Of a stretch of 64,000 bases of DNA, positions 11,572-40,068 are shown piece by piece. The stretch's first letter is position 1; each line of letters opens with the position of its first letter. The notes beneath the pieces were generated by a model. That model had not been told where the DNA came from. It did no database searches and worked only from the letters and a program-made list of their open reading frames with translations. This DNA is from Caecitellus pseudoparvulus (lineage: Eukaryota; Protista; Bigyra: Bicosoecida), in assembly GCA_965644315.1 (NCBI GenBank), contig CBFFRQ010000086.1, positions 59,878 through 123,877 of the forward strand, in the 5' to 3' direction. A program made the position numbers and the translations under genes.

Positions 11572-14500
11572 ATGGCCTTAATTCAAGACACCATCACAGG
11601 GTATGTCCCTGCAGATGCATCCTTTAGCAGCATCTGCATACAACCATCTCTGTTGCTGCGCAGAGCACTGCGAGTTGCGGCAAAAGAGCCTGGCCTGAAC
11701 AGGTACCTCTTCGTCGGGGGACACTTGTTCAGAGCGCTACAAATGATGGTATTCCCGGTACTTGCTGTCTTGGCTGTCTCAAAAAATACCGGAGGTGAGG
11801 TCAAATCAAACGCACATAGGCAAAAGCGGCGACTTTCAATCATTGTACACTTCTTGCCCAGGTGACGGATTGCGTGAGCTGCTGGCAGTGTCACAGCTTG
11901 CGAGCGTCTCAAGATTTCACCCGAGCATCAATATCATAGTATTCTTTCTGGCTCTTGCTTGGGCAGCTACCTTCTCAGCGCTCGCCATCAACGTCGGGTG
12001 GAGAGCAGCGTAAGTGCAGGATACCGCAAGCAAACCACCTGAAGCGATCATTCTGTGAACTACCTCCCCCTCCCTGCAGCACCGCCACTGGACAACAGCG
12101 ATGGCAGCTCTACGCATGGAGAGCCATGGTCTTCGTCAGCAGCACCTTCCTCTTCCTCCCCACTCTCGGTGCGTCGCCCAACCCCAACACCACTCCCACG
12201 CCTGCCGCCCCCTCGCAAGACAAGCACCGCCGCGACCATGCCGCCCTCCTTGCACGGCCCCCCGCACCACTGCGCAGGCGCCCTCGTCGACACCATGGGC
12301 TGCCAAGGCACGGAGGCTGTCCTGGGCGGCTGCTGGCAAGGCGCACACCTCGCCCTCAGCGTCCTCGGCGCCGTGTTTGGCTGCATGTTCACGGCCCTGA
12401 CCATCGCTGCCGCCGCCGTGTACGTCGACCGCACCCCCGGCACGACTGCATGGCATGCAGTGTCGGACGGGCGCGCAGATGCCACCATGCTGCTGCAGCA
12501 GGTGGTGCTCATCATGGTGTACGGCATCGTCGGCGCAGCCAACCTTCCCGGCTGGCTGTCCGTGGTCATCCTGGGCTTCGTCGCGACGACCTGGCTGCAC
12601 CACTTCATCATGCGGCAGCCGCACGCTGTGAGCTTCATGAACAGTCTGCGGGCGGGGTGTGGCGCAGTCTTCGCGTGGGGCGTCGTGTGCCTCGCTGTCG
12701 CGCTGCTGCGGGGCAGCTCCGATGTCGGCCTGCTCTTCTTCACAGGTGCCGTGCTCAGTGCCGCCCTGGCCCACTTCATGGTGCTGCGCCGTCGCATGAT
12801 GTTGCTGCAGGCCCAGGCAGTGGACGTGTCGTCAGATGTGGACCTGTCACTGTGGGCTCGCACCCGCCTGCAGCTGGCACACGACACGACGTACTCGGTG
12901 CTGGCGCTGCCTGCAGCTGTGTGGTTGGGGGGCGGCACGTTGTTGGCTGGGTGGGAGAGTCGAGCGAGCAGTGACGGTCTGACAGCCCGGCAGCAGGTGG
13001 AGGCGCTGCTGCGGGCGGTGCTGCCGCAGCAAAGCGAAAGCGACGCCTCCAAAGCCGATCAAACTCCGTATGTGCACAGCAAAGCAAAACGCCCAGGCAA
13101 CTTTACATCACATTCCTTGTTTCTTGCTTTGCACAGATTGCTGTACCAGGATGACGATAGTGAAGACTTCAGCCCCGTTGCATCGCTTCACTCCGAAGCT
13201 GGCCCCAGCCCCCGCCTCACTGAATCAAGATCATCATCGTTCAGAGTTGAGGGCGGGAAGGGTGCCTCTCTGGCTGCTGCTCAGCAAGCTCGCCGCATGA
13301 TCGCTGGGGGGGCGAAAACAGTGGCTCGCTCGCAGCGGAGCGGGGGCGGAGATGCTGAAGATGCTGATACTGATCTTGACACAACATCTCCTCGGGCCGC
13401 CATCGCCACGGCCCTGGTAATGCTCGTGCATGGTGAGCTGAGGGCACGAAATGACGACGCCAAGCTGTCTGCGACCCTCCTCATGCTCCTCGCCGACATG
13501 CGCGCCCACTGCCTCAAGAACAAGTTCATGGAGCTCATGGCCCTCTCACAAGCCAAATCACACGCCTCCCTCCCATGGGACGTCCAGTTCTGGGTCGAAC
13601 AACGCCTCCAAGTCCTCCGCACCGTGCAAGAGCATGCCACAGGCGAAGGCGACCTCAGCCCCGTCGACCGCCTGCTGTTCGACCAGCACTTCACATGGAT
13701 CATGAAGCACCAGCGTGCCTGGTACCGAGGCCTGGCCAGCATGTTCAGGGAGCTGGCCTCACCCACACCCGACATGGCTGCTCTGCAGGTCTCCGCGCAG
13801 GGCCTCGCTGACGCCCTCATCGACACCGAGCACAACTTCAGGGAGCTCATGGCCATCAACAAGAACTCCGTCAAGGTGCTGCGGGCCAAGGCAAACTACC
13901 TCATCCGCATCCGCAGGGCTGATGCCGAGGGCGCCGCCCTCCTCTCCCGCGCAGAGCGCCTGGAGGCCGCCGCCCTCTCACGCACACAACGAGAGGTGTC
14001 ACACTTCAAGCTCCTGGCCAACGGCGGCGAGCACCTCGTCATGGACGACACCGCAGCAGTCATTGTGGCCAACGGCGAGATGGCGCACCTGGGCGAGATC
14101 ACCAAGGTCAACGCCGTCGCAGCGGCACTCTTCCGACGCACCAAGAACAACATGGTCGGGCAGAACCTCAGCACCCTCATCCCCCCGCCCATCTCAGACA
14201 TGCACGACATGTTCCTCAGGCGCTACGCAAATACTGGAAAGACCCGCCTCATGAACAACACCCGCAACCTCCTGGGACTCGACTCCACCGGCGCCATCTT
14301 TCCTGCACGAGGCACTCTGCGTGAGACGCCACCCCTGGAGGGCAGCTCGGCGGCACAGTTCACCATGCTCATGCAGCCACTGCGGGTGGCGGAGCACCAC
14401 CTGCTCTTCGCGGGGCCAGCGCAGGGCTACCAGATCTGGGCTGGAGACGCCGAGAGCTACAAGCTCTTCGGCATCACCTACCGCTCCCTGGGCGAGACAG

Positions 14501-17442
14501 CCGTGTCAGCTGTGCAGTTCCTGCCCGAGGTCGACATGGCCTTCACAGCCGCGTGGCGCGCGCAGCGCGCGGCCATGGAGGAAGATGGCGCCGACACTGA
14601 CGAGGCTGGTGCGCCCATGAGTCTGCCCATGGCCAGCCGCGATGCAGGCGGCACTGGCTCGCGTCGGCGGTCCCTGCTGCAGGCAGACAAGGCATTCCAG
14701 CGCACACCTGTGACGAATGTGACGAGTGAGCACGTGAAGCATGTGTTCGCGATGGTGCAGAAGATCATGCTGCCGTCGGCGGGGGGCGTGCTGTACTTGT
14801 TGTCGTGGAAGCACACTGCCGAGATGCAAGGTGTTGTGGGAAAGGCACACGGCCTGCACAGCAACAAGAACGCCACTGCCCCATTGGCCGGAAAAGGGGT
14901 GGCGGCTTCTCTCATGCATGGTTCCGGAGCAAAAGAAGCTGGGGTGCGATTTTCTGAGGAGAAGCCCGTGGAAATCGCCGGCCCTCCATCAACCCCACCG
15001 CTAAGTGATTCTCATGTGAGGGTGGACACTTCTGGGGCCGCTGCTAGCTCACAGACGTCTGAGCCAGGCACACCGCACATGCTGTCTCCCGGGCCACTGC
15101 ACCATACCTCTCTCTTCATGCAAAGTCCTGCACATGGACAGCACGGCCGCCCACCCAGACCGGCTGAACAACTAGGAACACCCACCTCAGCAAGGAGCAT
15201 GCAGTTCCACAAACAAACATCTGACCTGCAAGCATCTAGTCCATACATGGAAAAGCCTGCTCCCGAAGTACCTGGGCACTCTGGAAACAGTAGCGAAACA
15301 GGGACGTCATCCTTTTCAGGGTCAGCGTCCACCGCCGCCACTCGCCACTCCCTCTGGACCAAACACGTCCTCGACATCACCGCCAGCGAGCAGCAACACC
15401 CCGTCGTACTCCACCTCCGCCTCTCCTTCCTCGCACAACTCATCCTCCTGCTCGCATTCTCCGTCGCCATCTTCGTCATGCGGGTCGACGCCGTCGAATC
15501 TCTGTCAGTGCTCGTCACTGCCATGAAGCTCGGAGGTGAGCGCCTCCTCCACGCCCGGGCCGCCGTCATGCTCGCCACCTCCATGGTGCTCGTCAACACC
15601 GGCGTGCACGTGGACTCCATCGCATCCCTGCGCACCAAGCTCACGGCAGAGCTGGACACCCTGTCCACCATCACCTCGGACCTGCAGCACTCCCTCGGAT
15701 CCATGCAGAACAAGCTGGGCTTCCATGTGGACGACTACACCCTGCCTGTGACCGGTGCACATGGCTCACTGCAGTACCTCACGCCCTACGACGCGACGGT
15801 ATGGCTGCTGGGCCACCTGAGTGTCGTGCGCGACCTGCCTGATGCCGAGGTCACGACAGACCACCCCAGCGTCGGGGCTGTGCTCAACGCCACCTCCCTG
15901 CTCAGCGACGTCTTCCCACGCAGCGTGCGGGAGGTGGAGAGTGCCACCGCACAGTGGATCGAGCATCACAACCTGGAGGAGGCCATCGTCACTGTCTCCG
16001 GCCTCGTCGTCGCAGTGGTGCTGGTGGGCTCCCTGTCCATGCTCTTCATCTCACGCCTGGCGTCCCACCGTGTGTTGGTGCTGCGGGCGATGGGCAGCAT
16101 GCCAGTGCGCATGGTGAAGGCGCTGGCGCGGGCGTCACTGCAGGAGGGGCGTCGTCACTTGGCGATGTTGGCGAACGCGGACGAGGCGGAGGATGATGTG
16201 GGTGTGGTGGACGACGTGGAGGGGGGCGGCTCAGCCTCGCCCGATGTTATTCCATACACGCAATCCTTTAAAGGGCCAATACAACCGCTTGCGGTCGCGC
16301 AAGAAAAGGATATCGAGCAAGCGACAGAGTCTCAGGCAGGTTCGTCCGGAAGAAGAGGAAGCGCAAAGAACACTAAGCACTCTTCTGCATTCCGGACTGA
16401 AATGCTCGACTCGTCCCGGTTCAGGACAGCTGCGCTTACTCGAATGATGGCCCCCACCGTCCTCATCTTCGCATTCCTCGCCGGCATCTGGTCTGACTGG
16501 TTCATCACCACCTCCGCACTCCTCAAAGACGCTGAACGCACTTACGCCGCACAGGAAACCGCCGTGCACAGCACCGCCGCACTGCAAACCATCCTCTCCT
16601 CCATGCTTGTCCTCGTCAGGGCTGGCGCCGTGCCTGGCGCTGTCGCTGCCGTCGATGTCAGCCTCGCCGCAGCCTTGGGCGGCCTGCAGACACTCGTGCA
16701 GGGCACCGCCGCAGGCAGCCTCACCAGCAGCCAGCTGCCCGCCATCCAAGACGGCACGTGGGCGGCAGGAGTCCTGACCGAGGATGCCTGCGCCGTGCAG
16801 GGCGGACTGTACGACATGGCTGGCTGTGCTGCCTTCGCCTCTGGCCTCCTGGCCACCTCCGGCGTGCAGGGCGGCATGCTGCGCTTCACGTCGCAGGCCT
16901 CCGAGCTGACGTCCCAGGTGCAGAGTGGCGCCATCGCAGTGGGCCTGAACGCCAGCCAGGTCGACACCCTCCTCGCCTCCCAGCGCTACGCCGCCACCGT
17001 CCTCGCCAACGGCACCGAAGCCCTCAGCCGCAGCCGCTTCCTGCACCGCTCAGTGCACCCCTACATGCTGGGCACCTGCACGGCGCTGGCAGAGGAGTTC
17101 CACGATGACACACGCGGCCTGCATGAGGCAGCCCTGGGCCGATCACAGGCCCTCACCGCCGTCCTGCTCTGCCTCATGGTGGTGTCCATGGTGGCGTGGA
17201 TCTGGCCAGCAGCTCGGCAGCTGGGCAAGGATGTGTTTGCGACGCATGCTCTGCTGGCTGCTGTGCCGCCTGAGGTGCAGGTGCGGGTGCCGAGCATGAA
17301 GGCGGCCCTGGTGAAGATCGCTGAGCTGACGGCGCAGAGTGGGTCGGACGGCACGCTGACGGACATGGGCGCGATGTTGGGCTTCGACGAGGATGATGAA
17401 GAAGAAGGGGGGCCTTCTGAAGAGCAGGGCCCTCAAGTGTAA
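11572..17442 (+). CDS. TmcB/TmcC-like multi-pass membrane protein with TPR-like helical region and PAS domain (copy 1), 5' end spliced
   Basis: N-terminal TM bundle, then WDVQFWVEQR/FRELMAINKNSVKVLRAKANYL helical region and PAS domain GEITKVNAVAAALF..MVGQNLSTLIPPPISDMHDMFLRRY. Four C-terminal TM helices follow. Introns at about 11601-11662, 11795-11861, 12010-12079 and 12169-12277. Confidence 0.8.
12071..13037 (+). repeat. Near-identical block A (partner 19044-20010), includes intron 12169-12277
   Basis: Direct comparison: constant offset of 6973 with only scattered substitutions. Confidence 0.95.
13451..14828 (+). repeat. Near-identical block B (partner 20430-21807)
   Basis: Direct comparison: constant offset of 6979. 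Confidence 0.95.
15325..16223 (+). repeat. Near-identical block C (partner 22529-23427)
   Basis: Direct comparison: constant offset of 7204. Confidence 0.95.
16444..17396 (+). repeat. Near-identical block D (partner 23765-24717)
   Basis: Direct comparison: constant offset of 7321. Confidence 0.95.
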
Positions 17443-18340
17443 GCAGGGGGGCGTCCCCCTGCGTGCAGGGTGTTGAGGATCGGAGGGCTGCGCAGCATGA
17501 CGCAGCAGGGAAGTTGAGTGCAGCAGCTGGCATGGTCTTCACACGTTGGCTAACTCTGCAGCATACGAATGCATCCCCAAGGGGAAAGCTCCCTCATGCT
17601 AAAGAATCTTGTGTGTTGGCTGCTGAACCAATTCTTCAGCTTCTGGCACCTGATCCGGCTTGCCAGCGCGCAGAATGCAAACACTCCGTGTTGGCGATGG
17701 GTCAGTCATCTCCAGGCATCATCCACTCGGGAATGCTTTCCTTCACCATCAGGCGTCCTTCTGAACGGTGCGGCTTTTCTTCCCTGCAGACTTTCTGCTC
17801 ACGAATTCAGCGGCGTGGGAGCCATGCCTTCAGATTCTCGCTGGTACAGTGCCGACGGAGGAGGCCGGCAATGCCCTACTGGCCCCACCTTGCACTTGGT
17901 TGACCTCGAGGCTTGCAGACTGAAGCACCCCCTGCCTTCCACAAGGAGAAAGGATTCATGCTTCCTTATTCATGTGTGACAGCTTGGCCAGTTCCTGGTG
18001 CAGTCGATGCGCTCTCAAGCGCCATGGTGAGGGGCCTGTGATGGTGTGCGTATGGCTTCACTTCGCCTGGGCAGGGTCGAGGGGGGGCAATCGCAGCCGG
18101 CACTGCACACAACCCGCCGAGGAACAAACCCCACCCTTCCCTCTCCACGCATACATTCGGTGTGATGGTGCATTCGCCTGGACCCCTGCTGACCCACCGT
18201 GGCCCACACGGCAGTCGAAGTATCCAGCCTCGGCGTGGCGAAGAAAACGCTCAGCCACGCTGTTGTCAGCCACGGCGTAGGACTCGCAGATCAGCGTCTT
18301 TGCAAGGAAACTGCCGAAGTCCACTAGGCTTGCTTGTGAC

Positions 18341-21300
18341 ATGGTGAGCTAGCTGATGCGAGCACCTAGAAGTCTTGAAACAAGTGCAGCCAACAATGAG
18401 GACACGCGCGGTGCCAGCCGCGGAAATTAGGCCCGGGAGCGCCAACTTGGCCAACTCCACTTCCCATGTCCCCCTCGCTCACAGGCTTCAAGAAAGGGTG
18501 CCAGCTCTGAGCGAGGATGGCTGGAAACAGTCCAGCTTGTATTTACTGAGTAAGCGCATGTGGAAGTCTCCATGGCTGCTTCGTTCCCACAGCAGAAACC
18601 ACGCGGCAACCTCGCAGAGCGCTCCGAGTAGCTGTCAAGGAGCCAGGCCTGAACAGGTATCTCTTTGTCGCCGGCCATGTACTTCGGACCCTCCAGATGC
18701 TTGTCTTCCCTATGCTCTCCACGCTCGCCATCGGGCGCAGCAGCGCGAGTGAGTTCCAGCCAGGTGCTTCGCAAGTGTACCACTCGCACGACCTTTGCCA
18801 CCGCGTCTTTCAGCCAGCGACGGCCTTGAGCAAGTGCTCACAGTCACTCAGCTAGTGAGCGTATCGCGGTTTGTCGGAGACGTGAGCGTTGTGGTCTTCT
18901 TCCTGGCCTTGGTTTGGGCCATCGCCTTCTCAGCGCTCGCCATCAACGTCGGGTGGAGAGCAGTGTGAGTTTCAGCGCATCAACAGCAGTCAAACTCGCT
19001 CGAGTTGGATGCCGCCGCACCTCCGCACTTCTTCCCTTCCCACTCCCTGCAGCACCGCCACCGGACAACAGCGATGGCAGCTCTACGCTTGGAGAGCCAT
19101 GGTCTTCGTCAGCAGCACCTTCCTCTTCCTCCCCACTCTCGGTGCGTCGCCCGACCCCAACACCACTCCCACGCCTGCCGCCCCCTCGCAAGACAAGCAC
19201 CGCCGCGACCATGCCGCCCTCCTTGCACGGCCCCCCGCACCACTGCGCAGGCGCCCTCGTCGACACCATGGGCTGCCAAGGCACGGAGGCTGTCCTGGGC
19301 GGCTGCTGGCAAGGCGCACACCTCGCCCTCAGCGTCCTCGGCGCCGTGTTTGGCTGCATGTTCACGGCCCTGACCATCGCTGCCGCCGCCGTGTACGTCG
19401 ACCGCACCCCCGGCACGACTGCATGGCATGCAGTGTCGGACGGGCGCGCAGATGCCACCATGCTGCTGCAGCAGGTGGTGCTCATCATGGTGTACGGCAT
19501 CGTCGGCGCAGCCAACCTTCCCGGCTGGCTGTCCGTGGTCATCCTGGGCTTCGTCGCGACGACCTGGCTGCACCACTTCATCATGCGGCAGCCGCACGCT
19601 GTGAGCTTCATGAACAGTCTGCGGGCGGGGTGTGGCGCAGTCTTCGCGTGGGGCGTCGTGTGCCTCGCTGTCGCGCTGCTGCGGGGCAGCTCCGATGTCG
19701 GCCTGCTCTTCTTCACAGGTGCCGTGCTCAGTGCCGCCCTGGCCCACTTCATGGTGCTGCGCCGTCGCATGATGTTGCTGCAGGCCCAGGCAGTAGACGT
19801 GTCGTCCGATGTGGACCTGTCACTGTGGGCCCGCACCCGCCTGCAGCTGGCACACGACACGACGTACTCGGTGCTGGCGCTGCCTGCAGCTGTGTGGTTG
19901 GGGGGCGGAACGTTGTTGGCTGGGTGGGAGAGTCGAGCGAGCAGCGACGGTCTGACAGCCCGGCAGCAGGTGGAGGCGCTGCTGCGGGCGGTGCTGCCGC
20001 AGCAAAGCGAGGGAGCACGAGGGGCCCACGAAGATGAAGGGTATGCAGACCACGCAGTCCATGATGACAGCGCGACTACCGCAACGGCATTGACCCCGGC
20101 CCACCATGGAGGCATCCATGCGCACTTTGGAGAGCCAGGTCCAGTGGATGTGCACCAGCCGGAGTACGAACCCGCCGAGAGTGTCAGGGGAACCCAGATG
20201 ACGATTCGCACAGATGATGTCCCATCCCTCTCCATGCCGCCAAGCACTTCGTTTGCTGCTGCTCAGCAAGCTCGCCGCATGATGGCAGGGGGCGCAAAGG
20301 CATCTGGCCGTTCCTCAAAGCGATCTCGAATCGCAGGCGGAGGTTCTGGAGCCATCGACGTTTCCTCAGCACGTACTGCAATCGCGACGGCACTGACTCA
20401 ACAAGTGCACACAGAGCTCAAGAGCCGTGATGACGACGCCAAGCTGTCCGCGACCCTCCTCATGCTCCTCGCCGACATGCGCGCCCACTGCCTCAAGAAC
20501 AAGTTCATGGAGCTCATGGCCCTCTCACAAGCCAAATCACACGCCTCCCTCCCATGGGACGTCCAGTTCTGGGTCGAACAACGCCTCCAAGTCCTCCGCA
20601 CAGTGCAGGAGCATGCCACAGGCGAAGGCGACCTCAGCCCCGTCGACCGCCTGCTGTTCGACCAGCACTTCACATGGATCATGAAGCACCAGCGTGCCTG
20701 GTACCGAGGCCTGGCCAGCATGTTCAGGGAGCTGGCCTCACCCACACCCGACATGGCTGCTCTGCAGGTCTCCGCTCAGGGCCTCGCTGATGCCCTCATC
20801 GACACCGAGCACAACTTCAGGGAGCTCATGGCCATCAACAAGAACTCCGTCAAGGTGCTGCGGGCCAAGGCAAACTACCTCATCCGCATCCGCAGGGCTG
20901 ATGCCGAGGGCGCCGCCCTCCTCTCCCGCGCAGAGCGCCTGGAGGCCGCCGCCCTCTCACGCACACAACGAGAGGTGTCACACTTCAAGCTCCTGGCCAA
21001 CGGCGGCGAGCACCTCGTCATGGACGACACCGCGGCAGTCATTGTGGCCAACGGCGAGATGGCGCACCTGGGCGAGATCACCAAGGTCAACGCCGTCGCA
21101 GCGGCACTCTTCCGACGCACCAAGAACAACATGGTCGGGCAGAACCTCAGCACCCTCATCCCCCCGCCCATCTCAGACATGCACGACATGTTCCTCAGGC
21201 GCTACGCAAACACAGGCAACACTCGTCTCATGAACAACACCCGCAACCTCCTGGGACTCGACTCCACCGGCGCCATCTTTCCTGTACGAGGCACTCTGCG

Positions 21301-24300
21301 TGAGACGCCACCCCTGGAGGGCAGCTCGGCGGCACAGTTCACCATGCTCATGCAGCCGCTGCGGGTGGCGGAGCACCACCTGCTCTTCGCGGGGCCAGCA
21401 CAGGGCTACCAGATCTGGGCTGGAGACGCCGAGAGCTACAAGCTCTTCGGCATCACCTACCGCTCCCTGGGCGAGACAGCCGTGTCAGCTGTGCAGTTCC
21501 TGCCCGAGGTCGACATGGCCTTCACAGCCGCGTGGCGCGCGCAGCGCGCGGCCATGGAGGAAGACGGCGCCGACACCGACGAGGCTGGTGCACCCATGAG
21601 TCTGCCCATGGTCAGCCGGGATGCAGGCGGCACTGGCTCGCGTCGGCGGTCCCTGCTGCAGGCAGACAAGGCGTTCCAGCGCACACCTGTGACGAATGTG
21701 ACGAGTGAGCACGTGAAGCATGTGTTCGCGATGGTGCAGAAGATCATGCTGCCGTCGGCGGGGGGCGTGCTGTACTTGTTGTCGTGGAAGCACACTGCCG
21801 AGATGCATGGCCGAAAGAGGGAGTCAGCCACAGCACATGGTGGCCGTGGCCGATCATCCAGCAATATCAGTGTTCGCAGTCGTTCAGCACGTGGCGGCAC
21901 TGACATCGACACAAGGCGACATCGGTCGACGAGCCATGTTGGTGCCAGCGTGGCGGAGGTGCCCATGTCGCCGACCATGGGACACGTGGCCCGCACCATG
22001 TCAGAAGTGGGCGATGGGGGCCGGGATGAGTCTGGGCAAACTGCCACCTTCCCCCAACCAGTTCCTGGGGCGGACGCTGCACCTACTGTGTTGCTTGCAG
22101 ATGCCGTGAACACTCCCAGCGACGCGACAGCAGAGCCAACGAAGCTGGTTCCCTCTGCGTTAGCACCACGGACGATGGGTACACGTGCAAAGTCTGTTGG
22201 AGCGAACAGCCCTTCAAGTCGTGAGCAGTCTGCTGCTTCTCCAACAGGGGGCATCGCGAAACCCACCCTGCTCGCTTCGTTCTCCTCACAAGAGTCCAAG
22301 GGCGGCAAGAAACTCTCCAGACTGCCGCCATCTGGCCAAAGGTCCGCGTCACTTACTCGTGCCACACGTTATTTGGGCTCAGGCCCACCGACGGGCGGGC
22401 CCACCCCCACCACGCCCATCGCAAGGGTGCCGAGTAGAGATCCGAGCCTTTCCAAAACGGACGGAAGCAACATCAACCCTTTCTCCGAGGACGAAAGTGA
22501 TATCGATGGTTCAGGATACGCCAACTCCGCGTCCACCGCCGCCACTCGCCACTCCCTCTGGACCAAACACGTCCTCGACATCACCGCCAGCGAGCAGCAA
22601 CACCCCGTCGTACTCCACCTCCGCCTCTCCTTCCTAGCACAACTCATCCTCCTGCTCGCATTCTCCGTCGCCATCTTCGTCATGCGGGTCGACGCCGTCG
22701 AATCTCTGTCAGTGCTCGTCACTGCCATGAAGCTCGGAGGTGAGCGCCTCCTCCACGCCCGTGCCGCCGTCATGCTCGCCACCTCCATGGTGCTCGTCAA
22801 CACCGGCGTGCATGTGGACTCCATCGCATCCCTGCGCACCAAGCTCACGGCAGAGCTGGACACCCTGTCCACCATCACCTCGGACCTGCAGCACTCCCTC
22901 GGCTCCATGCAGAACAAGCTGGGCTTCCATGTGGACGACTACACCCTGCCTGTGACCGGTGCACATGGCTCACTGCAGTACCTCACGCCCTACGACGCGA
23001 CGGTATGGCTGCTGGGCCACCTGAGTGTCGTGCGCGACCTGCCTGATGCCGAGGTCACGACAGACCACCCCAGCGTCGGGGCTGTGCTCAACGCCACCTC
23101 CCTGCTCAGCGACGTCTTCCCACGCAGCGTGCGGGAGGTGGAGAGTGCCACCGCACAGTGGATCGAGCATCACAACCTGGAGGAGGCCATCGTCACTGTC
23201 TCCGGCCTCGTCGTCGCAGTGGTGCTGGTTGGCTCCCTGTCCATGCTCTTCATCTCACGCCTGGCGTCCCACCGTGTGTTGGTGCTGCGGGCGATGGGCA
23301 GCATGCCAGTGCGCATGGTGAAGGCGCTGGCACGGGCGTCACTGCAGGAGGGGCGTCGTCACTTGGCGATGTTGGCGAACGCGGACGAGGCGGAGGATGA
23401 TGTGGGTGTGGTGGACGACGTGGAGGGTGGTGGAAGGAGCGGTGCGTCTGCGGTGATGCCTTCCCGGCAAGATAGCGTGGAGGTTCCCCTTGGTCCACCC
23501 ATGGCCTCTGCTGGACGCAAGTCCGACGCAGCAGCCGCCCACACTCACAGGTCAGTGCAGTCCACGGAGTCCTCAGCAGGAGGAGGTGTCATTGACGACA
23601 GTTCTCACAAGTCATCACAAGCCCCGCCCGGTGTGCTGCCTGGCGAAGCCTTCTCAGGCGGCGGCGCCCTTGCCGGCACCGGGCTTCGCGCTGTATCTCG
23701 CACGGGACGCAACCGAGGTGACCTTGTGGACTCCTCGCATTTCAAAGCCTATGCCTTGTTGCGGATGATGGCTCCCACCGTCCTCATCTTCGCATTCCTC
23801 GCCGGCATCTGGTCTGACTGGTTCATCACCACCTCCGCACTCCTCAAAGACGCTGAACGCACTTACGCCGCACAGGAAGCCGCCGTGCACAGCACCGCCG
23901 CACTACAAACCATCCTCTCCTCCATGCTCGTCCTCGTCAGGGCCGGCGCTGTGCCTGGCGCCGTCGCTGCCGTCGACGTCAGCCTCGCCGCAGCCTTGGG
24001 CGGCCTGCAGACGCTCGTGCAGGGCACCGCCGCAGGCAGCCTCACCAACAGCCAGCTGCCCGCCATCCAAGACGGCACGTGGGCGGCAGGAGTCCTGACC
24101 GAGGATGCCTGCGCCGTGCAGGGCGGACTGTACGACATGGCTGGCTGTGCCGCCTTCGCCTCCGGCCTCCTGGCCACCTCCGGCGTGCAGGGCGGCATGC
24201 TGCGCTTCACGTCGCAGGCCTCCGAGCTGACGTCCCAGGTGCAGAGTGGCGCCATCGCAGTGGGCCTGAACGCCAGCCAGGTCGACACCCTCCTCGCCTC

Positions 24301-24826
24301 CCAGCGCTACGCCGCCACCGTCCTCGCCAACGGCACCGAAGCCCTCAGCCGCAGCCGCTTCCTGCACCGCTCAGTGCACCCCTACATGCTGGGCACCTGC
24401 ACGGCGCTGGCGGAGGAGTTCCACGATGACACACGCGGCCTGCATGAGGCAGCCCTGGGCCGATCACAGGCCCTCACCGCCGTCCTGCTCTGCCTCATGG
24501 TGGTGTCCATGGTGGCGTGGATCTGGCCAGCAGCTCGGCAGCTGGGCAAGGATGTGTTTGCGACGCATGCTCTGCTGGCTGCTGTGCCGCCTGAGGTGCA
24601 GGTGCGGGTGCCGAGCATGAAGGCGGCCCTGGTGAAGATCGCTGAGCTGACAGCGCAGAGTGGGTCGGACGGCACGCTGACGGACATGGGCGCGATGTTG
24701 GGCTTCGACGAGGATGAAGAAGACATAGCACATGGAATGTCTGATGAAGTGTTGGTTGCCACGATGCCCGATGCCCCTGAAGGTGCAAACTCCTCCTCGT
24801 CAGATGGAGCACCAGGAGCAGCATAG
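18341..24826 (+). CDS. TmcB/TmcC-like multi-pass PAS protein (copy 2, tandem paralog); start uncertain
   Basis: Same domain blocks as copy 1. The 5' exons encode ALRVAVKEPGLNRYLFVAGH, homologous to copy 1 ALRVAAKEPGLNRYLFVGGH. The start is tentatively an ATG at 18341 followed by an intron ending at 18484. Confidence 0.8.
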
Positions 24827-34249: not shown

Positions 34250-37200
34250 TCACCCTTCGCCACGCGCTTTCATGGTCAAGTTGATCACGAACTCCCTGAA
34301 GACCTTCATCGCGCGCTTGTCCTTGTTCAGGTACTGCGTGGGCACACTGAGCAGCAAGCTTCGGGTTCCGTCCAGCTGCGCCTGCATCTCTTCCAAGTGC
34401 GGCAGGTGCACCGCAAGATGCAACGCCAAAGACAAGATAAGAAAGGCGACATTCATGAGGACGTTCGCTTCTTGTGATGATTTGGCGGTTGTCCTCGTTG
34501 CATCGTCAAAGATGTTGTCCAGCGATCTCATGCCGTACCGAATGTACGGATCTTCCATCGTCACCATGTCACGAAGGCGCGTGAACAAGACCATCAAGTC
34601 CTCTTCTCGATTCTCCACTCCAGAACTGGTGCTACTGAGCGTCCTGTTACTGAGGACTGCGCCAATTTCTTCCGCGATTCGGTCGCTGGTGATGTTTCGC
34701 AAGGCAGCTGCGACACCACGACCCCGCTGCAAGTAGCGCTGCAAGACGATTTGCATGCCAAGCTTCATGACGCCTCCGTCAAACGTCGTGCAGTTTGGAG
34801 GGAGTAAATAGTGCTTCTCAATGCCTTCGCAAGAGTTTTCGTAGAAAATTTGGAAGGCCGGACCGTTAACTTTCAAGCCATCGACTTCTTGCAGTCCATC
34901 CTGAGCTGCAGAGCCTTGGAGTAACGTTGTCAGGCGCACCAGACTCATGTCCAGTGCTGTGCCAAGTTGCTCCAGCGCCGCTGCTCGAGCAGGACCACGG
35001 GGCAGAGTTACTGCCAAGCTGGAGGCTTGGTTCACCTTCATCACCTGGCTGGACACTTGCTGTGTCGCGTACAGCCGCCGAATGTCCTGCAACGTAGAGC
35101 GCTGAGAGATGAGCAGGTTCCCCATGGTGCCACCCAACCAAGTAATAGTGAGGGCAACTTGCAGCATAAGGATGCCCAGGTGGACGAGGGAGAAGTGCGA
35201 GGTGTCCACTACATCTCGTTCTCCAATGCGCTGGGCGGACAGGTGCCACTTGGAAATGGTACGATTGGCGGCCACCATGCGCATCGCCCTGCTGTCCGTG
35301 CTGCTCGCAACGCTGTCACCAGAGGTAGGCACGCTCACTTTAGCGACGCCCCCTTCGTCTTTACCAGCCCCGGCCTCCTTGTCGGCTGCTGCGTCCTCGT
35401 CCATGACGGCTTCCGCAGCAGCTGTCGATTCCTTGGCAGTGCTCTCCTTGAACTCCACAAGCCTCGCCTTGGCGAAGCGTTTCAGCTTTGAAAGAGCAGA
35501 CTTGGGCAGAGCTAGCAGCACCGCCAGCGCTTGCTGGCGAGACGTAGAGATTTTGGAGACCATGGCTGAAAGGTACAGCCCCAAGCCCAGGCCCAGGACT
35601 GACGTTGCAACGATTGCTGTCACCAAGATCAGGAGCTGAATGTCAGACATAAACGACGCAGTCTGGAACTGACGAAGAGCAATTGTCGCGTTCAAGCTGT
35701 CCACAAGCACCAGGGGGACGTTGCGCACTGTGTATGTGAAAGAGGGGTTATCCATGTTGAATGCAGAGGCATTCGACTTGACCAGCGAGTCCAAATTGGC
35801 AATGGCGTTCCCCATCGCTGCGTACAATGTCATGGTGCCTCGCGTGTCCCCCACGTCGTACACGTCAACGGTGGACTTCAGCCCGCCTGCTTTCAGCCGC
35901 TCGGCGTGGGTGTCAATCTGTTCCGAGTCGGAGACAACCTCACGCCATCGATCGCGAACAGTGGAAGCTTCCCTGGCCAGCGATGCCTTGATGGCATCCA
36001 CAGTTCCGATCGGAGCACCAAGCGAGTGCAAGTTTAGCATGGCCGCACTCACCGTGGCACCTTGGATGGTGCGCAGCACCTGTCCTGCATGCGTCAGAGA
36101 CTGCACCCGCAGCGCGGTCTGCTCCTTGATGATGTCCAGGCCAACGAGCTGCGTGATACCCAGCAGCACGGCAAACACCAGTGCTGCTCGCAGACCTCCT
36201 TTGATGCCCCTGATTGACGCCTCAGTGTACCCCGTGCGGCGAATAAGAGATAGCAGCACAGTTCGTGGGGCTGTGGCAGAGTTGGAGGATGTGGTGCTTG
36301 ATGCAACTGACCCCCCCCCAGGGCCAAATGTGTTGCCCGCCTCGCTCGCACCATCCCCGAATCCACTGATCGCACTTGCCACCGAACCAGGAGACTTTAC
36401 CATGGCCAGGACTGTAGATTTGGGGCGAGCGTCTGCGGGAAGCGCGCGAGCCCCACGCTTGGCATCCTTGCTGCTGCTCGGGGCGGCTTGAGGCTTGCCA
36501 TCTGCGCGGAGTATGCTCCGCGGTGGGTCTTCCCGTTTCACGAAGCTCTTCGTTTTTTTCTTCAAAGACGGCATGCTCGCATGGCGTGGAAGGGTCTTGT
36601 CCTCAGTGGGCTCCGATGCAGGCAAGAGCTGTCCAGCACTGCGTGAGTGGGCACGAGTGAAGCGACGCTCCAGCCCTGCCTCTTCGCCTTCTTCGGGTTC
36701 AGCACTGCCACCTTGTTCACCAGCCTCCAACGTGCCGACTCCTCCATCCTCCATGATAAGTGGCTCGCTGTCCAGGGGAGGGGGCAGCTCAGTGCCCTCT
36801 TCCACCGGGCTGACGCGCTCCTCAGCTGGCGTGGGGTGTGCAGCGGCCGGGGACACGACCAACTCGTCCAGCGCTGCAGTGTCGATGGAGTCTGCTGCAC
36901 TCATGGCGTCGACTTCAGGCACTCGCATCCCGTCTGGGTTGCTGGCCCCAGTCTCCGCACTCTCGGGGACCGGGTGGGGAACGCGCACCTCGAGCCTGGA
37001 AGCAGCCCTGACCTTCTGAGGCGGCACAGGCTGGGGGCTCGCGAGGGAGTGAAGGCTGCGTGAGCTGCTGTTAGCTGTTGATGTCATGCTGCGGTCGAGC
37101 CGCCTACTGGGCTTCTTGCTGAAGGGCTGCCACATGACCAAAGCCACGGCCCCACTCAGTGAAGCCCCCGCAGCGACCGCGTCAGGCAAGGCGAGCAGCT

Positions 37201-40068
37201 GCACGTGCACGGACATCTTTTCACCCCCAGGGAACACCATTGGTGCAACTGCATCGCCAACAGATGCTTTAAGACGCTTCCAGGAGAAGTCCCGGCGTGG
37301 TTGCTCCAGTGCGGCCTGCACCACTGCCGCCAGTTCAGGCAGAACCTCGTCCAGGTCCACGTCTGCCGGCCCATCTTGAGACGTCTCCACATTCAACATG
37401 CGGTACGCGCTTGCTGACGCGGAGAGCACCGACAGACCATCGCTGGCTAAGCCACAGAGCATGAAGTCATTGTCGATAGTGACATCTTGGAATACGCAGA
37501 CAAAGTTTGCTGTGATTTCATCCTCCTCTGGCGGCGCCTCCTTCAGGGTGAACCGCACCGGCCACAACTGATGGAACGAGTCCTCCACGACTGTAAGGCG
37601 CGTGTTGCGAAGCACGTGCTGGTTTCCTCGTCGAACATGTTCCAGCAGCATGTTTTCCAGCAGCCTGTCCAGAGGCTCCGGCAGGAGCTCGTAGAGGGGC
37701 GTGCCCACCATGTCCACTGGTGATCTGCGGAACAGCGCCGCTGCTCGGCTATTCACGAGCGTGATCTCCCCTAAGTTGGAAGGATCACCAGAAGCATGCA
37801 CGACTGCGGTCGATTCCACGCCCATGGACACTTGTCGCGTCTCGTCCATGAGCACAAACTTTGCGACGTGCCTGCTGAAGCGACCAGCCATGGTCTCCTC
37901 CAAGCGCTCGGCTTTGGCAATCATTTCGGACCCCTTCACCATCTTCCCCAGCACCGTGATCATAAAGGCTCCGTACTGGCGAAGGACGTTCACATTCTGC
38001 CGCTGCATGCGCAGTTGGGTGCTGTAGTTCTCCTCCGCGTCGCCGATGGCCTTGTGCAGCTTGCGCCCCAACTTTGCCAAGGCTGCCAAATCGGGCACTG
38101 GCGCTGCCAGCTCCTCCCACATGCGCACCGCCTGCTGTCGTATGCTGGTCTCTGCCTTGAGCGCCAGGGCTCCGTGCTGCTCCATCATCAGCCTGTCCAC
38201 CTGGGAGGTGATGTTGCCACTGCGGGGGCCACCGCCGTCTTCCTTCGTGCTCTCTCGCAGCTGTCGGTTTCGCTGGTAAACAAAGAACTGCACGTCCAGC
38301 GCATTCGTGGCCTTGCGCGCCATGCTGAGTGCTGTCAGCTCAAGGTACCGAGAGCTGTCGGAGGAGCGGTAGAAGTCCGCAGCTGCCATGTGCACCATGC
38401 CATTGTCAGGGAACCTCGCAATGCACCAGCGGAAGGCGAACTCGGCGGCATCACGCAGCTCCTGAGTGAGCTGGTCCCGTTGGGCCGGGCTGAGAATGGA
38501 GTCCAGTGAGGCACCTTGTCCTGCCATGGCGATGAGAAGCGCGTCAACTGTGGGAGCAGTAGTCACGCGTCCACTTGCGCTCGGTATGCCTCCTGCTGTG
38601 CTTGCTGCGTCATCCCCGCCGCTGGTGCCCCCCGACCCGACACCTACCACATCCCCCATGAGTGCATCTATATTGCTGCGGTTCGTGCGCATCATGGTGT
38701 GCATCATGAACAGTCGGGTTCGCGCCCACAGCATGGCATCAACGGATGCCGTCAAGTCCTGCAGCGGCAGGGCGGCGATGTGGTGCCGCCAGGCCCGCGC
38801 CGCCAGGCCGCCGGCAAAGGTAGCGACTGGGAGCAAAATGCACCAGCTGACTACCAGCAGCGGTTGTGGGGAGTACAGTGCCAGGAGCAGGGCAACGACA
38901 GCGAGGCAGTAGGCCCCACCGAGGCCAGCCTGCAACTCGTTCATGCGCGGGTTGACAAAGGGCTGCACTCGAATGAAAGAGTGCAGCCACAGTGCCCCAG
39001 CCAGGAGGAGCAAGACCACTTTGAACCACAGAGCCTGGCCTCGTAGCGTAGCATAGGCCACCATCAGCGCGATTTTCATGCCCAGCAGCCGCACATCAGC
39101 TCGCCCATCGGTCCGGGCACCAACATCGTCACACAGGAGGTGCCTCTTGATGAACACGCTCTGTGTCGCAAGTGCCAAGAAAACAAAAGGGGGCACTGTC
39201 AGCAGGACGGCGATGCAGCCAACGATGTGAGCTCCGTCCCAGCACCCAGTTGTGGCTCCTTCAAGCCCAGTGCAATCCAGCCACCTCAGGGACAAGGACA
39301 CGCAAGGAACAAACAGCACAAGTGTGGACAGGCGCGCGACTCCACGGTGGAGTTGCAACATCCACTTCACCTGCGGTGCTCCAGTGTGAAACTTTCGCCC
39401 GATGGCGGCTGTGAGCAGCGTGAACATGAGCATCCACATGAGCGCAAAGGAGAACACCACCGTATACAACATCGGTCCGATGAGACTGTTCAAGGACGAC
39501 GCATTGAAAATCGAGAGGACGGAAGTGACAGTTGAGCTGGCGGCTGTGAAAGGAGGGGGCTTGAGAGCGTTTCCGACACCGTAGGTTCTGAGTGTGACTC
39601 CAGCCCTCCGGCTGACACATTGTGGAAGCAGGGTGGGGAGGCCAGCACTCACTCGAGGCAGTCCCTGCTCGTTTCAGCTCTTCTTGAAGACTAGATAGAG
39701 GGAAGAGGCACCTGTGGGGGGGCAGGGGAAGACCCGTCACGTGTGCAGCGGAAGTAGCTGTGCTGCAGGGTGGCCGCAGGTGCGGGCCCAAGCGCTGCAG
39801 GCTGCCTTGACGCACATCTGCACTGCAGCCACCACGAGCATGACGTGTGTGGTCGTTTTTCCTGAGCTAGAGTCCTTGGCAGCGACGTAAAGTGCCTGTG
39901 TGTTCGTGGAGTACGTGAGTGAACGAATGGTGCACTGTTGTTGCAATCTATGCTCTGCAGGAGCCTGGCCGCTGTGACCTGGGCGGCACAAAGCACAGCA
40001 CCTACCCCGAAGATGCCTCCGCGAAGAGCATTGCTCCATTTCTCCAGGGTGCTGAGCCGCATGGACAT
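34250..40068 (-). CDS. TmcB/TmcC-like multi-pass PAS protein (copy 3, divergent paralog), 5' end spliced
   Basis: GCWDGAH, DGRADV, LDVQFFVYQR, NVNVLRQYGAF, PAS GEITLVNSRAAALF..MVG..LYELLPEP and VVDTSHF are collinear with copies 1 and 2. An upstream exon encodes ALYVAAKD. Confidence 0.8.

Follow-up and report, generated by a model that had tools for sequence, protein, structure and literature searches.

We analyzed a 64,000-nt stretch of DNA from the bicosoecid protist Caecitellus pseudoparvulus (GenBank assembly GCA_965644315.1, contig CBFFRQ010000086.1, positions 59,878 to 123,877; hereafter the window), which contains two TmcB-like genes arranged head-to-tail. Copy 1 spans 11572-17442 and the recognizable coding part of copy 2 spans 18613-24826. 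The genes are mosaics in which four blocks, A to D, are nearly identical between the copies and the segments between and around them are strongly diverged or unalignable. This pattern is very probably the outcome of an old tandem duplication followed by interlocus gene conversion that was confined by loss of homology. All positions are those of the window, and features lie on the forward strand unless stated otherwise. The source assembly comprises 30.6 Mb in 215 contigs. The GC content is ~62%, and introns are short and of the GT..AG type.

Identical blocks alternate with diverged segments

Alignment of the copy 1 gene with the copy 2 gene by blastn yielded four colinear blocks with DNA identities of 98.3-99.3%. 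Block A (12063-13037; partner 19036-20010) includes the 3′ end of intron 2, exon 3, intron 3 and the part of exon 4 that encodes five membrane helices. It is 98.8% identical, and its coding differences are all synonymous. The blastn span at this position is longer (11939-13037 vs 18894-20010; 95.3% including gaps), with near-identity beginning at ~12063. Block B (13451-14828; partner 20430-21807), which encodes the TPR_TmcB unit and a FixL-like PAS domain, aligns without gaps over 1378 nt at 98.5% identity, and 18 of its 21 differences are synonymous. Blocks C (15322-16223; partner 22526-23427; 902 nt, 99.2%) and D (16441-17402; partner 23762-24723; 962 nt, 98.3%) each encode a module consisting of a transmembrane (TM) helix, a helical bundle and another TM helix. 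All seven differences in block C and 13 of the 16 in block D are synonymous.

Three linkers separate the blocks. The N-terminal half of linker 1 (13038-13450; partner 20011-20429) is unalignable, and its C-terminal 62 residues are homologous but old, with 61% amino acid identity (z = 16) and a proportion of differing synonymous sites, pS, of 0.71. Linker 2 (14829-15321; partner 21808-22525) has 164 codons in copy 1 and 239 in copy 2; both frames are open, and similarity between them is undetectable (z = -1.5). For linker 3 (16224-16440; partner 23428-23761; 72 vs 111 codons), the last ~20 residues alone are recognizably homologous (35% amino acid identity). The two C-terminal tails (17403-17442; partner 24724-24826) are unrelated, and no homology between the copies was found in the sequence 3′ of them. 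The alignment register shifts by +24, +225 and +117 nt between successive blocks, each a multiple of three, so that both frames remain open.

Every block border is abrupt, with an identity of ~100% giving way to background over a few bases. Blocks B and D are informative in that, where they begin, identity drops from ~99% to ~60% within sequence that is still homologous and in register. Outside the blocks, blastn aligned the two genes at the DNA level in just two places, an island of 38 nt in linker 1 and a patch of 58 nt in exon 1.

An earlier reading of this stretch, made from its letters alone (the sequence-only reading), had described much of this organization: four near-identical blocks, linkers that stay in frame and differ in length, with coordinates that agree with ours within 3 nt, and 5′ exons that are homologous but strongly diverged, for which we obtained 62-67% nucleotide and 64-67% amino acid identity. 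Two of its statements need narrowing. First, it had noted identity across an intron. This is true of intron 3 (12169-12277; partner 19142-19250), which is non-coding, has been homogenized together with its flanks and shows one mismatch in 109 nt. It is not true of intron 2 (12010-12079; partner 18965-19052), which is diverged, with lengths of 70 and 88 nt and several indels; only its last ~15 nt are near-identical, and they mark the 5′ end of block A. Second, it had regarded the linkers and tails as mostly unalignable, which is correct for linker 2, linker 3 up to its last ~20 residues, the N-terminal half of linker 1 and the tails, but not for the C-terminal part of linker 1.

Some much shorter segments depart from their surroundings. 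Exon 2 is diverged except for an identical micro-tract of 39 nt at its 3′ end (11970-12008; partner 18925-18963), and the 38-nt island in linker 1 (13273-13310) is near-identical over a family-conserved motif amid saturated sequence. Both may be very short conversion tracts, or they may reflect constraint at the nucleotide level. Within block B, six consecutive third-position differences are concentrated in 16 nt (14232-14247; partner 21211-21226), an arrangement with a chance probability of ~3e-7. This island may be an unconverted remnant or a separate micro-tract.

Silent divergence separates the blocks from their surroundings

The spliced exons were compared one by one and not as a joined protein, and divergence was estimated by the Nei-Gojobori method. 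Synonymous divergence (dS) is 0.025-0.056 and non-synonymous divergence (dN) is 0-0.004 in blocks A to D. By comparison, pS is 0.56-0.85, i.e., saturated, and dN is 0.24-0.79 in exon 1, exon 2, the C-terminal half of linker 1 and the last 20 codons of linker 3. Expressed as silent differences, the blocks differ at 43 of 1026 sites and the alignable unconverted segments at 96.5 of 135 (Fisher p = 1.4e-73). Silent and non-coding divergence that is far lower within the tracts than in adjoining homologous segments, together with tracts that end abruptly within in-register homologous sequence, as at blocks B and D, is the signature by which interlocus conversion is recognized.

Two further observations bear on when and how the blocks became alike. 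(i) In the old segments, i.e., exons 1 and 2, the C-terminal half of linker 1 and the terminal part of linker 3, copies 1 and 2 are nearest to each other among the family members. The duplication is thus old, although specific to this lineage, and the diverged segments were not imported. (ii) The near-identity of intron 3 indicates that homogenization acts on DNA, and it can be attributed neither to constraint on the protein nor to a complementary DNA (cDNA) template. The central proposal of the sequence-only reading, an old duplication with later homogenization of the conserved blocks at the DNA level, is therefore well founded.

The blocks contain 52 differences in total, of which 45 are synonymous, six are non-synonymous and one is intronic. 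Judged by this sequence pattern, both copies are real, distinct genes under purifying selection. Decay of one copy into a pseudogene was considered and rejected, as it would make most of the differences non-synonymous.

The linkers are coding and predicted to be disordered

No in-frame stop codon occurs in the 862 codons of the six linkers, whereas 21.6 would be expected (P = 4e-10) from the other five frames, which hold 1-10 stops each. The G+C content at third codon positions (GC3) is 0.51-0.59 in the linkers, near intergenic composition, vs 0.80-0.85 in the blocks. Serine, threonine, proline, glycine and alanine are enriched in the linkers and hydrophobic residues are depleted. With 10-16% serine and 4-12% proline, their earlier description as rich in these two residues holds in moderation. 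AlphaFold models built from small family alignments have a predicted local distance difference test score (pLDDT) <50 over residues 250-368, corresponding to linker 1, in the model starting at 12280, and over residues 290-363, corresponding to linker 3, in the model starting at 15322. The pLDDT is <50 in the tail as well. The linkers are thus predicted to be disordered coding segments specific to each copy, as the sequence-only reading had supposed, and their likely cytoplasmic location, which it had also proposed, agrees with the topology considered below.

The linkers resemble nothing else that we could find. Their positions are gappy and unalignable in all homologs of the family alignment, and none of 88 comparisons with relatives and paralogs gave significant similarity (z ≤3.3). 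DNA searches of the whole 30.6-Mb assembly with both genes returned the partner copy, one other paralog (C18) matching at 67-69% in blocks A and B, and nothing else; no third locus matched any linker. Tandem repeats or slippage were rejected as a source of the linkers, since only trivial repeats of 15-46 nt were found.

No consistent splice-site pairs were found around the linkers. Linker 2 of copy 1 does contain a GT at 14831 and a pyrimidine-rich AG at 15319, which are 489 nt apart and would preserve the frame, and this pair has no counterpart in copy 2. The segment 14831-15319 could be a facultative in-frame intron, or the pair could be there by chance.

Conversion tracts elsewhere in the TmcB-like family

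The genome encodes more than 20 TmcB-like paralogs with open frames of 1600-2700 codons. We computed the percent nucleotide identity per region for four pairs of paralogs, given here in the order block A, linker 1, block B, linker 2, block C, linker 3 and block D. For copies 1 and 2 the values are 99, 46, 98, 39, 99, 42 and 98. The other pairs, named after their contigs, have values of 64, 44, 83, 41, 61, 46 and 58 (C44), 67, 85, 92, 49, 52, 41 and 50 (C31), and 99, 98, 99, 90, 51, 46 and 56 (C94). In their unconverted state, the conserved blocks of the family are ~50-67% identical at the nucleotide level and the linkers are unalignable.

The tracts behind these values differ in length and position. 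Members of the C44 pair (L032/L033) are 280 kb apart and share a tract of 1038 nt in block B with 95.7% identity on a background of 58-64%. The inverted C31 pair (L034/L035) has a 1.8-kb tract with 93.5% identity that spans linker 1 and block B, and the inverted C94 pair (locus group L036/L037/L038) has a 4-kb tract with 98.4% identity that extends over block A, linker 1, block B and the greater part of linker 2. A third gene neighboring the C94 pair shares tracts of 210-250 nt, at 94-98.6% identity, with each member of the pair. Conversion, as read from these alignments, is common in the family: at least three other pairs carry tracts, and their breakpoints differ. The sequence-only reading had suggested a constant sensor scaffold with variable signaling cassettes, possibly genome-wide, and had asked whether further copies have the same breakpoints and new linkers. 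The rest of the family does not support such a design, as the breakpoints are not shared and some tracts include linkers 1 and 2.

A third TmcB-like paralog lies within the window on the reverse strand (34250-39652). It is ~32% identical in amino acid sequence in block B and has no DNA-level match to copies 1 and 2. That this neighbor has been left untouched indicates that nearness alone does not bring conversion.

The GC3 of the converted blocks in copies 1 and 2 is 0.82-0.85, at the top of the family for each block, and in the C31 pair it is 0.72-0.81 in converted blocks vs 0.59-0.66 in unconverted ones. High GC3 in converted blocks fits GC-biased gene conversion, although it is not a test of it.

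Proposed mechanism and its alternatives

The sequence of events that we favor would begin with a lineage-specific, old tandem duplication of a TmcB-like membrane-sensor gene, giving copies 1 and 2. Non-allelic (interlocus) gene conversion would then have copied DNA between the two loci wherever homology sufficed, namely in the N-terminal membrane domain, the unit formed by the TPR and FixL-like PAS domains, and the two modules in which TM helices enclose a bundle. The disordered, putatively cytoplasmic linkers, the tails, intron 2 and the 5′ exons would have evolved rapidly, with indels, and lost homology. Because strand invasion and heteroduplex extension need homology, conversion tracts would halt at the edges of these segments. 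Having escaped conversion, the diverged segments keep the true age of the duplication. We infer that the borders are set by loss of homology and not by selection for different linkers, and that conversion happened several times.

The sequence-only reading had linked copy-specificity to disorder. Two details bear on this point: (i) The copies do not differ in the short disordered loops of block B (model residues 451-462 and 771-794). (ii) The edge of the tract in block B falls ~60 nt into the helix that is predicted to open the TPR unit, and the border of block D lies just past a conserved juxtamembrane motif, which is itself diverged. Thus, homology rather than disorder per se appears to set the borders. 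With respect to timing, the conversion proposed in that reading is upheld. Repeated events at this locus are plausible, and the 16-nt unconverted island in block B is the sole firm sign of more than one.

Several points weigh against the explanation that we favor: (i) Heterogeneity of divergence from block to block is not significant (p = 0.11) and that within blocks is marginal (p = 0.01-0.1), so conversion may have come in a single burst. (ii) The nearest relatives in the protein collection are only 52-59% identical in amino acid sequence and are single copies on their contigs. (iii) The evidence that the near-identity is real comes entirely from within the assembly. (iv) All four blocks were converted but none of the three linkers was, although tracts elsewhere, in the C31 and C94 pairs, carry linkers. 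The escape of the linkers in copies 1 and 2 could be due to short tracts or to selection against linker replacement.

The latter possibility leads to the alternative that survives best, in which conversion proceeded as described above and selection removed those events that homogenized the linkers. One sensor scaffold would then have been kept with two signaling outputs, as in the sequence-only reading, and each copy would have docking or phosphorylation sites of its own in the linkers. Point (iv) above is mildly suggestive of such selection, all six linker frames have been kept open, and theory leads one to expect peaks of divergence at selected sites of converting duplicates (PMC3924837). 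However, linkers fail to align in all old pairs of the family, whether or not these have undergone conversion, and in all relatives, so that special selection need not be invoked. Furthermore, the alignable part of linker 1 has a dN well below dS and no sign of diversifying selection, the near-intergenic GC3 of the linkers suggests weak constraint, and the breakpoints are not common across the family. We therefore consider selection on the linkers an unlikely explanation of the borders. The more elaborate proposal, in which the pair would represent a single heme-PAS/ectodomain sensor wired to two sets of partners, the linkers and tail would be kept different by selection, and modular escape would be a general route in the family, seems to us doubtful to the same degree.

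An assembly or polishing artifact would mean that the genes are in reality more different, or that there is only one gene, and that cross-mapped reads make the blocks look identical. Near-identical repeats of 1 kb are indeed a known weak point of polishing. Nevertheless, the excess of synonymous over non-synonymous residual differences (45 vs six) bears the mark of a selection filter, which errors would not, and the block borders are in frame. Similar mosaics occur in pairs on three other contigs, including the pair separated by 280 kb and the two inverted pairs, and polishing cannot turn a background of ~60%, as in unconverted pairs, into 99%. An artifact is accordingly very improbable.

Still harder to sustain is the idea that the linkers are introns, or facultatively spliced exitrons, and that the mature proteins are nearly identical. 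The GC3 of the linkers, close to that of intergenic DNA, and the frame-preserving GT/AG pair in linker 2 of copy 1 speak for it. It is opposed by the complete lack of in-frame stops, by the other five linkers, which have no comparable splice-site pair, and by the confirmed introns of the gene, all GT..AG, which are just 67-109 nt long. In addition, called proteins of homologs from other organisms have variable insertions at the same places, and the C-terminal half of linker 1 contains the motif conserved in the family as well as the helix predicted to begin the TPR unit. We regard this explanation as scarcely credible. Finally, the whole gene could have been duplicated recently (dS ~0.04), with unrelated sequence, or sequence converted from a third paralog, later taking the place of the linkers, tails and 5′ exons. 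Such a history would account for the uniformly low divergence of the blocks, but it can be all but set aside, because exons 1 and 2, the C-terminal half of linker 1 and the terminal part of linker 3 are old versions of the same sequence, the DNA searches found no donor locus in the genome, and at least five independent replacements would be required.

Gene models of the two copies

The mosaic is described here for gene models that differ from the long open reading frames (ORFs) at 12055-17442 and 18914-24826. Copy 1 has four exons (11572-11794, 11862-12009, 12080-12168 and 12278-17442) with GT..AG at every junction, and its product matches the Pfam TPR_TmcB and PAS profiles. Comparison with relatives places exon 3 in a different frame from the long ORF. 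The protein sequence across the join of exons 3 and 4, FLFLPTLG followed by ALVD, is found as an uninterrupted N-terminus in one relative (P0004). In copy 1, the long ORF therefore opens with 75 codons that correspond to exon 3 in the wrong frame and to intron 3, and that are not coding in that frame. The Pro/Ser-rich "N-terminus" of both long ORFs (12055-12277 and 18914-19250) is spurious, intron 3 happening to be open, and the true frame of exon 3 gives a hydrophobic segment that is conserved among relatives.

For copy 2, exon 2 ends at 18964, exon 3 spans 19053-19141 and exon 4 spans 19251-24826. The frame homologous to exon 1 contains no ATG after the last upstream stop, unless an additional small intron is assumed. 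In the region 18480-18620, a candidate ATG at 18517, which is conserved, is followed by a stop 10 codons further on, unless an intron of ~56 nt with a weak donor is removed. The 5′ end of copy 2 may thus differ from that of copy 1.

Predicted protein architecture

TM prediction places seven or eight membrane helices at the N-terminus, encoded by exons 1-3 and, for five of them, by exon 4. The membrane part is followed by linker 1, the TPR_TmcB unit, the PAS domain, linker 2 and the two modules of TM helix, bundle and TM helix, which are split by linker 3. TPR_TmcB (PF25474) scores 33.7 and 33.6 bits in the whole proteins and 36.4 bits in block B alone, above the cut-off of 27. The Pfam PAS score is borderline, with 20.7-23.2 bits at a cut-off of 22.6.

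Structure and sequence comparisons identify the PAS domain more closely. With Foldseek, the PAS domain of block B superimposes on the heme domain of Bradyrhizobium FixL (PDB entry 2vv6) with a TM-score of 0.93 by target, a root-mean-square deviation of 1.3 Å and 26% sequence identity. With phmmer, it matches Rhizobium FixL (PDB entry 1d06) with E = 4.6e-9, and the His-Asp of the heme-binding helix is in register. The aligned histidine would correspond to the proximal heme ligand of FixL. In both copies, the PAS region (14020-14500; partner 20999-21479) is nearest to the heme-PAS oxygen sensors FixL and DosP in fold and sequence. The domain is a candidate gas or redox sensor. Pfam profiles revealed no output domain (HisKA, HATPase or other) in either protein, and Foldseek found no PDB match with E <0.1 for the fold of the C-terminal half.

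In the ectodomain of block D (16441-17402), a pair of cysteines spaced by 12 residues is closely followed by two glycines, and all four positions are invariant in 14 family members. This conservation suggests that the two cysteines may be disulfide-bonded within a helical bundle that faces outward. A cytoplasmic PAS unit, as in FixL, would imply that the three linkers and the tail are cytoplasmic and that both bundles face outward.

Implications

Gene conversion is a well-known, textbook mechanism, and copies 1 and 2 are a clean but ordinary example of its action. Their interest as a natural case of interlocus conversion confined by loss of homology lies in how very clean they are. Their folded domains undergo concerted evolution, and their long disordered linkers escape it and record the true age of the duplication. 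Two cautions for annotation follow from this locus. Identity between these paralogs is uninformative about their age, and the long ORFs mislead at the 5′ end, where they hide exon 3 and intron 3 in another frame. In addition, the family, whose more than 20 members are large membrane proteins that carry a FixL-like PAS domain, may merit study as candidate gas or redox sensors in this protist.

Comparison with known systems

Two known systems resemble the products of these genes. Like the FixL and DosP oxygen sensors, copies 1 and 2 have a predicted heme-PAS fold and related sequence, with His-Asp in register; unlike them, they were found to have no histidine kinase, cyclase or phosphodiesterase output domain. 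The Dictyostelium protein TmcB (PF25474) provides the second likeness, as TPR_TmcB scores above threshold and the proteins are large and multi-pass with a cytoplasmic helical-repeat unit. The profile covers the TPR unit only, and the remaining architecture of copies 1 and 2 was defined in this analysis. In Dictyostelium, tmcB is reported to have a role in sexual development, through macrocyst formation and cyclic AMP signaling, and to be induced by hypoxia (PMC12750705).

The mosaic itself has closer precedents. Converting duplicates are known to keep some regions highly diverged as the rest becomes homogenized (PMC3924837; HMA4 model, bioRxiv 10.1101/2025.10.29.685298). Interlocus conversion with peaks of divergence is known from the primate red and green opsins, and models of it were developed by Innan and by Teshima and Innan (reviewed in PMC3924837). 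As in the opsins, neighboring paralogs in the window would have been kept near-identical over most of their length by non-reciprocal copying, plausibly repeated, old divergence persists in sharply bounded segments, and non-coding DNA has been homogenized together with coding DNA. The divergent peak of the opsins is a short exon with two selected residues, whereas copies 1 and 2 have long disordered linkers (217-718 nt) with indels. For these linkers, loss of homology alone can explain the escape. The tandem HMA4 copies of Arabidopsis halleri are similar in that the effective rate of conversion varies along the gene and leaves a mosaic of low and high divergence (bioRxiv 10.1101/2025.10.29.685298). 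HMA4 is a young triplication, and its study drew on population data and a model, whereas copies 1 and 2 represent an old duplication with saturated silent sites, seen in one genome, in which the contrast between converted and unconverted segments is sharper.

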